Assembly: GCF_052425735.1 (NCBI RefSeq)
Contig: NC_135760.1
Span: forward strand, 11,904,001-11,968,000
Direction of reading: 5' to 3'
Origin: Oculina patagonica
Taxonomy: Eukaryota
Length of the DNA stretch: 64,000 nucleotides
Shown: piece by piece, positions 19,823 through 22,800 of the stretch
How the letters are laid out: each line of letters begins with the position of its first letter
Position numbering within the stretch: position 1 is the stretch's first letter
The notes under the pieces: model-generated
Database searches by the model: none
The model's input: only the letters and a program-made list of their open reading frames with translations
Told to the model about the DNA's origin: nothing
Made by a program: the position numbers and the translations under genes

Positions 19823-22800
19823 CTAATATTCATCGTCTTCCTCCTCTCCCTCAGCCTCAACAGAATCCAGGCCAACTTCCTCGTAATCCTTCTCCAGTGC
19901 AGCCAAATCTTCACGAGCCTCGGAGAACTCTCCTTCCTCCATACCCTCACCCACATACCAGTGGACAAACGCACGCTTGGCGTACATCAGATCGAACTTG
20001 TGATCCAGACGGGCCCAGGCCTCAGCAATAGCTGTGGTGTTACTCAACATACACACAGCGCGCTGAACCTTGGCCAGGTCACCGCCGGGAACAGCTGTGG
20101 GAGGCTGGTAATTAATTCCAACCTAAAAAAAGAAAATTACAGTATATATGACAACATAAAAGACAGTTTCTACGAGCGTCAGAAGAAGGGATGATCGGAG
20201 ATGATTGGTGACCCAGGGGGCAGCTAGTCGGGAAAAACTGGGCGAAAGGTTACTTTCGTCCGAAATCCCGTCGACCCGACCAGCTTCTTCGGGTTCCCCG
20301 AGAAAGATAAGAACTCCCACCGAAAGCCGAGTCCATGACCTTCCGGACACCGGCTAGGCTATAAGCTGGTTCAAACAGGTTAACTTCCTGCACAATGTAA
20401 GTAGTAATTCCATTCTGAACATTGTAAAATAGCTCCTAGTAGAATTATCACATAGCTTCCCTTAAATTACCAACCTTGAAGCCAGTAGGGCACCAGTCCA
20501 CAAACTGAATGGTTCTCTTGGTCTTGATTGTTGCAATAGCTGCGTTAACATCCTTTGGTACCACATCACCTCGGAACAGCAAACAGCAAGCCATGTATTT
20601 GCCGTGACGTGGGTCACATTTAACCATCTGATTGGCTGGCTCAAAACAGGCATTGGTGATTTCAGCAACACTCAACTGCTCGTGGTAAGCTTTCTCGGCT
20701 GAGATCACTGGTGCATAGGTGGCCAGAGGGAAGTGAATACGTGGGTAGGGTACCAAGTTGGTCTGTAATGAAAACAAAGGAAATATATTACAGTCAACTC
20801 TCTCTTAACGGACACCTCTATAAGACGGACACCTCCATGCCGTTTTCCAGTCATTTTACTGTACCCAAACTCCCTATAAGACGGACACCTCTCTAACAAC
20901 GGAGACTTTGAAATCATAAACGGACACTTGAGAAGTGTTTTTTTTATCATGTCAGTTTTTTAGTGAAAATACCTCCAAACCTCGTAACGACCTAAAGTAA
21001 AGTTAGTCAGCGCCCTACGGATACGTGTATACCAAGCGTACTAGCGAAAAAAATGACGCTTTAACAGATCTAGATTACTTCTCTACTTACGTCTATGGGC
21101 ACAAAAGGGGTCGTTTTCTACTTACATTACCACAGTTTGTCAGAGAAGCTCTCAACTTTTGCTTTAAGAAGCGAATACGGTCCTGTTATTATTTCAGTCT
21201 TGCTGCAGTTTGCAAAGAATTGTTGCATTGTGCATAGGTTTTGCTTTATTATCTCAGAATTATTGGTGTCGTGTTACCTCGACTCTCTTTAAGGCGGACA
21301 CCTCTCTAAGACGGACAGCTGCGGCCGGTCCCGAAGGTGTCCGTCTTAGTTAGAGTTGACTGTATAACTCAATGAAATGAAACATTCTCTTCCGAAAAAA
21401 ATTCCGAACTACTCCAACTAGAGTTGCACTCAGGACCTTCCCAACACCGGTTTATAAAAGGTGTAGTCAGAAAAATACTGGAGCTTAAAATTCAGAAAAA
21501 AGTGACTGGCAATATCTACATGGCGCGCGCATATTCAATAAAGATACCTGAAACTCGGTCAAGTCGACATTCAGAGCACCATCAAAACGGAGTGAGGCAG
21601 TGATGGAGGACACAATCTGACCAATCAGTCTGTTCAGGTTGGTGTAAGTGGGCCTCTCAATGTCCAAGTTGCGACGACAGATGTCATAGATGGCCTCATT
21701 GTCCACCATGAAGGCACAGTCAGAGTGTTCCAAGGTGGTGTGAGTGGTTAGAATGGAGTTGTAAGGCTCGACAACAGCTGTGGCAATCTGTGGTGCTGGG
21801 TAGATGGCAAATTCCAGCTTAGACTTCTTGCCATAGTCAACAGACAGACGCTCCATAAGGAGAGATGTAAATCCAGAGCCAGTACCACCACCAAAGGAAT
21901 GGAAGATGAGGAAACCTTGCAAGCCAGTGCACTGGTCAGCCTGAGAAAAATGACAAATCAAAGAATCAGTTGCGATCAGGTATGAAGACTTCACCAAAAC
22001 CCTCATGCAGCATCAGACTGTGGCTTACCAACTTTCGGAGCCTATCAAGAACAAGATCAATCATTTCCTTCCCTATGGAAGATAAGGAAACCTTGCAAGC
22101 CAGTGCACTGGTCAGCCTTTGAAAAATAAACCAAAACAAAAATTGTTGCTGAAGTTATACGAATTAATAGCCTGTGTACAGCCGCCCGCTCCCCCCCCCC
22201 CCCCCCCACACCCCTCAAAAAAAACTCCGAGGAAAATCCTGCTTTTTTGGCTGCATGTACACAATAATAAAGGGACATTGATTCTTAGCAACCAACTTAC
22301 AATGGCATGATACTTACCAATTTCCTTATCTTATCGAGAACTTGGTCGATGATGCTTTTTCCAACAGTGTAGTGCCCACGGGCATAGTTGTTAGCGGCAT
22401 CTTCTTTGCCAGTCATCAACTGGTCTGGGTGAAATAACTGTCTGTAGGTGCCGCAACGGACTTCGTCTGAAACAAACAGTTTTCACATCAATTGGACATA
22501 TAACATCATTAGGGACGGACCATTATTTTTTAGAGGGAGGTCGGTATGGAATCGAAAATATAGAAAAAATTGTTTGCAGGGTCTAAAAAGACAAAATAAA
22601 TTGTTTGCCGCAAACACGATGTGTATAACAAAAAATAGTTTGAATTTAAAAAAAAAATGTTTGCAGAGGTGCATAAACTAAAACAAAAGTTTGCAGAGGA
22701 AAACTTTTCTTTTCATATCCCCCCCCCCCCCCCCCCCGTTTTGCCTAGCTTTTCTTTCTTTTTCATGTATTTTTTTTTCTAGTCACATTGTAGATTAACA

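Follow-up and report, generated by a model that had tools for sequence, protein, structure and literature searches.

How does a gene acquire a complete intron and a potential extra exon from its neighbour, and does it still yield its protein afterwards? This question is raised by an alpha-tubulin gene, here termed copy 2, in a 64-kb window (the whole stretch of DNA analysed) of the stony coral Oculina patagonica. The original prediction held that copy 2 carries a pasted piece of its inverted paralogue copy 3, and that the gene either skips the resulting stop-containing segment, uses it as a poison exon or was recently inactivated.

Alpha-tubulin cluster and anatomy of the insert

A tblastn search with the spliced copy-3 protein as query detects four alpha-tubulin genes in the window:

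Copy 1: 17443..15019, minus strand
Copy 2: 23224..19826, minus strand
Copy 3: 26372..28751, plus strand
Copy 4: 29985..32993, plus strand

They have a common exon plan of 3, 223, 149, 393, 288 and about 300 nt. Copies 2 and 3 are arranged head to head with their start codons at 23507 and 26118, 2.6 kb apart. In the spacer between them, ARAGORN calls a tRNA-Thr with anticodon GGT at 25421-25496 (plus strand). Among nuclear tRNA genes of animals this anticodon is unusual, and the call may be a tRNA-derived repeat. About 17 ATT units (about 51 nt) are located at 24335-24385 (minus strand) in the spacer upstream of copy 2.

For copy 2, a gene model was built and translated:

19823..23507, minus strand: copy 2 from ATG 23507 to the stop at 19823
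23507-23505, 23224-23002, 22466-22318, 21940-21548, 20762-20475 and 20122-19823, minus strand: exons of copy 2
22466-22318, minus strand: own exon 3, isotype-specific and deeply diverged (C80, S113, I114, K121, I122)
22317-22117, minus strand: own intron 3, 201 nt, GTAAGT...AAAG, with a 17-G run

If the hybrid segment described below is skipped, the model translates into an uninterrupted protein of 451 aa (MRECISVH...EEDDEY), which bears out the claim that the skipped form would be an intact tubulin. The exon translations match Pfam Tubulin (PF00091) and Tubulin_C (PF03953) above the curated cut-offs. Together with the full-length frame, the MREC start and the acidic ...EY tail, both domains identify the product of the skip model as an alpha-tubulin. 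Apart from the insert, the 1356-nt frame and the ten splice sites are undamaged, with no stop, frameshift or splice-site loss. A processed pseudogene or retrocopy is ruled out by the presence of all five introns, and an intronless copy of exon 3 of copy 2 was not found in the genome. Two of these introns contain long G runs on the sense strand, 17 G in intron 3 (22199-22215) and 19 G in intron 2 (22717-22735), which are G-quadruplex-prone in the pre-mRNA and prone to length errors in assemblies. In intron 4 (785 nt), GGTGTCCGTCTTA-type motifs are repeated in direct and inverted orientation at 20790-20900 and 21290-21370 (minus strand). The block resembles a small insertion of the foldback or MITE-like kind and makes up much of the intron.

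Downstream of its own intron 3, copy 2 contains the following elements, listed with their donor in copy 3:

22116-22029, minus strand: hybrid segment, 88 nt, potential cassette exon, with AG before it and GTAAGC (22028-22023) after it
22116-22075, minus strand: own exon-4 start, 42 nt, part of the hybrid segment
22074, minus strand: filler A, a single added base at the junction
22073-22029, minus strand: exon-3 end of copy-3 type, 45 nt, matching 27366-27410 with 2 mismatches
22059-22057, minus strand: TGA that is in frame upon inclusion, from the frame shift at the junction
22028-21941, minus strand: pasted copy-3 intron 3, 88 nt, matching 27411-27498 with 3 mismatches
21940-21548, minus strand: complete exon 4 of copy-3 type, 393 nt, converted tract
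27366..27895, plus strand: donor segment in copy 3 (exon-3 end, intron 3 and exon 4), inverted, about 5.3 kb away

These coordinates agree to the base with the original prediction, according to which exon 4 of copy 2 begins at 22116 and jumps after 42 nt and one A to the end of exon 3 of copy 3, followed by the copy-3 intron with three mismatches and a complete exon 4 of copy-3 type. In blastn, 22073-21544 aligns with 27366-27895 at 97.9% identity over 530 nt, and all 11 differences are substitutions. Six of them are located in exon 4, which is 98.5% identical between both copies, and all six are synonymous. Since the identity runs through the intron, it reflects neither chance nor plain coding conservation. 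The other introns of copy 2 yielded no match to copy 3 in blastn, in agreement with a four-way alignment, so that the flanking introns are indeed unrelated, as had been claimed. The own intron 3 of copy 2 has no relation to intron 3 of copy 3 and occurs once in the genome. The same holds true for the paste junction, which has a single occurrence in the 529 Mb searched. In total, the insert comprises 176 nt and duplicates 42 nt from the start of exon 4.

It is highly improbable that the junction is an assembly artefact due to a chimeric read or to paralogues or haplotypes being joined along a wrong path. The cluster does contain four similar genes, and alleles instead of paralogues could account for the 2% by which the paste differs from copy 3. 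However, an artefact would need two switches, a non-homologous one with filler in mid-exon and a homologous return, and assemblers do not create non-homologous filler switches at repeats. Both flanks are unique copy 2 sequence. A chimera should be identical to its donor, whereas the paste differs from copy 3 by the 11 substitutions and by no homopolymer indel. Both differences in the 45-nt piece affect one codon: the paste has retained CTT as in two paralogues on chromosome 1, while the assembled copy 3 has meanwhile become TTG (27384-27386). Therefore, the paste and the assembled copy 3 have evolved apart, even if the CTT states might be present in a second haplotype of copy 3. The TTG Leu codon in exon 3 of copy 3 (plus strand) equals that of copy 1, suggesting that these two copies underwent a small conversion of their own after the paste event.

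Outside this genome, metagenome contigs were scanned for the exact exon-3 end of copy 2 and the junction, and no match was obtained in collections that may omit near relatives. An exact look-up of two genomic ORFs spanning the junction yielded no record in a source from which near-relative records may be left out.

Direction of transfer and origin of the insert

The contiguous arrangement of exon 3, intron 3 and exon 4, intron included, is common to copy 3, copy 4 and the two chromosome-1 paralogues, an inverted pair (C1) that matches the copy-3-type arrangement at 78-79%. This means, copy 3 was the donor and copy 2 the recipient, and the same distribution rules out a transfer from copy 2 to copy 3.

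A protein search revealed an exon with 94% identity to exon 3 of copy 2 in the ENA assembly ERZ25073805 (P0001), where the contigs L011 and L012 contain a tandem array of three tubulin genes. The middle gene of this array has the copy 2 signature C80, S113, I114, K121 and I122, an intact frame of 452 aa and one intron 3 of 151-152 nt. In this orthologue, the only one found and from a distant species, both the duplicated exon-4 start and the extra segment are absent. The insert is therefore derived, later and lineage-specific. Between copy 2 and the orthologue, dS amounts to 0.4-1.1 and intron 3 is not alignable. Within about 200 nt upstream of the ATG (promoter/5'UTR), conserved blocks can be aligned. 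Judged by these comparisons, copy 2 is an old, conserved alpha-tubulin isotype gene. The orthologous cluster (L011:1917-17485, L012) carries its three alpha-tubulin genes on one strand, whereas the window has two per strand in head-to-head orientation; the layouts differ, so an inversion or inverted duplication lies between them.

Exon 3 of copy 2 ends with ...AAATTG, followed by GTAAGT, and occurs once in the 529-Mb genome. Compared to copies 1, 3 and 4, it displays a dS above 1 and a dN of about 0.10. By contrast, dS versus the neighbours is 0.09-0.40 for exons 2, 5 and 6, and exon 4 has a dS of 0.067 versus copy 3. Copy 2 seems to be a mosaic, i.e. an old isotype homogenised exon by exon with its neighbours, from which exon 3 was spared.

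The two ends of the pasted tract differ in kind. At the non-homologous end, position 42 of the recipient exon 4 is connected via the filler A to position -45 of the donor exon 3, and this junction displays neither homology nor microhomology but a 1-nt addition. The other end is homologous and located within exon 4. At exon-4 positions 81, 117, 120 and 264, copies 2 and 3 alone have common states, hence the tract extends at least to 21677. Two states found only in copy 2, at positions 375 and 384, suggest that it ended before 21566. A bounded segment of high identity that includes non-coding sequence and is flanked by unrelated DNA is what gene conversion leaves behind. However, the 5' end of the tract is out of homologous register with the recipient and carries the filler A, which argues for conversion with non-canonical termination instead of plain conversion.

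To judge from this footprint, the likeliest origin would be break-repair copying from copy 3, after which the ends were rejoined in the absence of homology and one base was added. Exon 4 of copy 2 may have been broken about 42 nt from its start, and the downstream side of the break may have been lost or resected. The downstream end would then have invaded the inverted neighbour copy 3 inside exon 4 and would have been extended backwards through exon 4, intron 3 and finally 45 nt of exon 3. The new strand would not have been annealed in register but end-joined to the untouched upstream end, whereby one A was added. The expected product is an insert of 176 nt with a complete working intron, and an 88-nt hybrid with a full set of native splice signals on either side. 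The same product would result from a replication template switch of the FoSTeS/MMBIR type between the inverted paralogues. In this case, the nascent strand would leave copy 2 at nt 42 of exon 4, start to copy inside exon 3 of copy 3 and return by homology within exon 4. A distance of about 5.3 kb in inverted orientation permits a switch at one fork, and of the two switch points seen, one is homologous and the other is not. Nevertheless, we regard such a switch as unlikely: microhomology, which MMBIR normally needs, is absent, which is mildly against it, and the added base fits end joining better (PMC5104497). The original proposal of out-of-register conversion or template switching from the inverted copy 3 fits all tests run, i.e. 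the ancestral arrangement in copy 3, the non-homologous end with filler and the insert-free orthologue. While the structure of the insert and the direction of transfer can be read directly, the repair pathway is what we infer from them.

The term non-canonical termination of gene conversion comes from reporter experiments (Hartlerode et al.). The events observed there resemble that in copy 2 in that one tract end is homologous and donor sequence beyond the break is copied, yielding a local duplication. In contrast to the reporter events, which were triggered at an I-SceI site in a mouse-cell reporter and drew on the sister chromatid as donor, the copy 2 paste is natural, was transmitted through the germline, took place between inverted coral paralogues inside a gene and imported a whole intron. 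In terms of origin, the copy 2 insert represents a repair outcome already known, here produced in nature. With ordinary ectopic conversion or concerted evolution in tubulin arrays it shares the patchwork identity between neighbouring paralogues, with a dS of 0.067 in exon 4, 0.13-0.26 in the other exons and above 1 in exon 3. However, ordinary conversion proceeds in register and keeps the gene structure, whereas the 5' end of the copy 2 paste is shifted by an intron and two exon parts. Tandem exon duplication, too, can yield an extra splice-competent unit within a gene by duplicating part of an exon and an intron. Unlike such units, that of copy 2 is derived from a paralogue and fuses the 5' part of exon 4 to the 3' part of exon 3. 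As it breaks the frame, it is no substitute for either exon.

Splicing of the hybrid segment and use of copy 2

The hybrid segment directly follows the own acceptor AG at 22118-22117 and precedes a GT, and when spliced in, it is translated into ...LIFHREGND followed by the TGA at 22059-22057. In this, too, the sequence is as originally described. The status of 22116-22029 as a cassette exon is a prediction from the splice-site sequence. Inclusion would shift the frame and lead to the TGA, which is located 28 nt before the 3' end of the cassette and has three exon junctions downstream, so that the included transcript should be an NMD substrate. Direct joining of exon 3 to 21940 would restore the normal 451-aa tubulin.

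All four splice sites around the cassette are native, and each had already worked in its place of origin. The own acceptor, together with the U-rich tract, is unaltered, and the imported donor, branch region and CAG acceptor come from a working intron. AAG acceptors are used elsewhere in the cluster and in the ERZ25073805 orthologue. Both introns are short (201 and 88 nt). With native splice sites and short introns, inclusion is the default expectation, and it would make copy 2 a null allele. Copy 2 might then be a young pseudogene: the two short introns would be removed independently, the cassette would always be included, every transcript would contain the stop, and the intact frame elsewhere would be due to mere recency of the event. 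We consider this reading tenable, albeit not probable. The divergence since the event is small (11/530), and therefore missing disabling changes are only mildly improbable (p = 0.19 at the conservative end). On the other hand, the 6 exon-4 differences from copy 3 are synonymous without exception, whereas 5 of 133 positions differ in the pasted non-coding part. On the copy 2 lineage, 2 to 6 neutral changes contrast with none at 299 non-synonymous sites (Fisher p = 0.19 to 0.006, a range set by the polarisation of the changes; 0.19, at the most conservative polarisation, is not significant). Further points against a pseudogene are the absence of any stop, frameshift or splice-site loss in 1356 nt, the conservation of the isotype across a deep split (dS 0.4-1.1) and the retained promoter block. 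Exon-4 constraint, seen on very few changes, and an otherwise undamaged gene weakly suggest that copy 2 is still used. In polyA RNA runs, only 6-7% of the window's sampled words are recovered as shares that carry no positions, and copy 3 transcripts alone may account for them.

A mixed outcome would reconcile these observations: some productive skipping would sustain the isotype, and inclusion would be an unregulated, wasteful by-product. That partial skipping keeps the copy 2 isotype in use has, in our estimate, slightly better than an even chance. A paste by break repair combined with mixed splicing of a copy 2 still in use is the account that we hold to be fairly probable.

The duplication itself may bear on splicing, as the duplicated 42 nt contain a perfect palindrome:

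22100..22111, minus strand: CCAGTGCACTGG, first copy, 12 nt, 5 nt into the cassette
21924..21935, minus strand: CCAGTGCACTGG, second copy, 5 nt into exon 4

Each copy thus begins 5 nt past an acceptor. In an ensemble prediction, the two copies are paired in the pre-mRNA with a probability of about 1 (duplex of -26.9 kcal/mol), and the pairing is also found in the minimum-energy and centroid folds. The modelled stem could possibly influence the ratio of skipping to inclusion. A structured RNA across 22335-21925 was ruled out, because the fold is no more stable than that of shuffled sequences (z = +1.1) and the palindrome pairing alone stands out.

A potential poison exon and its meaning

By form, the copy 2 segment is a potential poison exon, for its sequence combines splice-competent borders with a premature stop upon inclusion. 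Like known poison cassette exons, it is short, lies between an AG and a GT, has a length not divisible by three and carries its stop more than 50 nt before later junctions. Known poison exons are typically conserved and autoregulatory. By contrast, the segment of copy 2 is young and absent from the L011/L012 orthologue of a distant species, and it is known here from its sequence. We know of no tubulin poison exon, and a full-text search retrieved no paper with alpha-tubulin and 'poison exon' together in its title or abstract.

Could inclusion be modulated by tissue, stage or tubulin level, so that the output of the isotype is tuned via NMD? The anatomy fits, with 88 nt and an in-frame stop upstream of three junctions. 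The weak signs of continued constraint on copy 2 and the predicted long-range stem beside the two acceptors, by which the balance between inclusion and skipping could be set, point in the same direction. Against it, the segment is young, missing from the only orthologue found, and consists of a repair by-product with no selection signal of its own. Moreover, tubulin autoregulation is co-translational and acts via the MREC N-terminus, which copy 2 has retained. A regulated poison exon is accordingly very unlikely, and regulated use would make up a small share of the skipping case. It is also quite unlikely, if a shade less so, that one mis-terminated repair event provided a conserved isotype with a ready-made poison exon that is skipped to survive and tuned by NMD, possibly at a ratio set by the stem.

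For genome annotation, the locus implies that gene predictors will truncate copy 2 or silently skip the segment. Beyond this, copy 2 preserves a clean footprint, left in nature, of a repair outcome for which engineered reporters are otherwise the main source: homologous copying from a paralogue is followed by failed annealing and closure by end joining. A complete intron was imported and a splice-competent, frame-breaking exon built in one step within an essential gene family. If the poison-exon reading were true, unproductive splicing would have been born here in one step and caught at an early stage. Should copy 2 still be in use, it would be a young case, open to dating, of the origin of alternative or unproductive splicing; if it is not, it would exemplify the loss of a conserved tubulin isotype.
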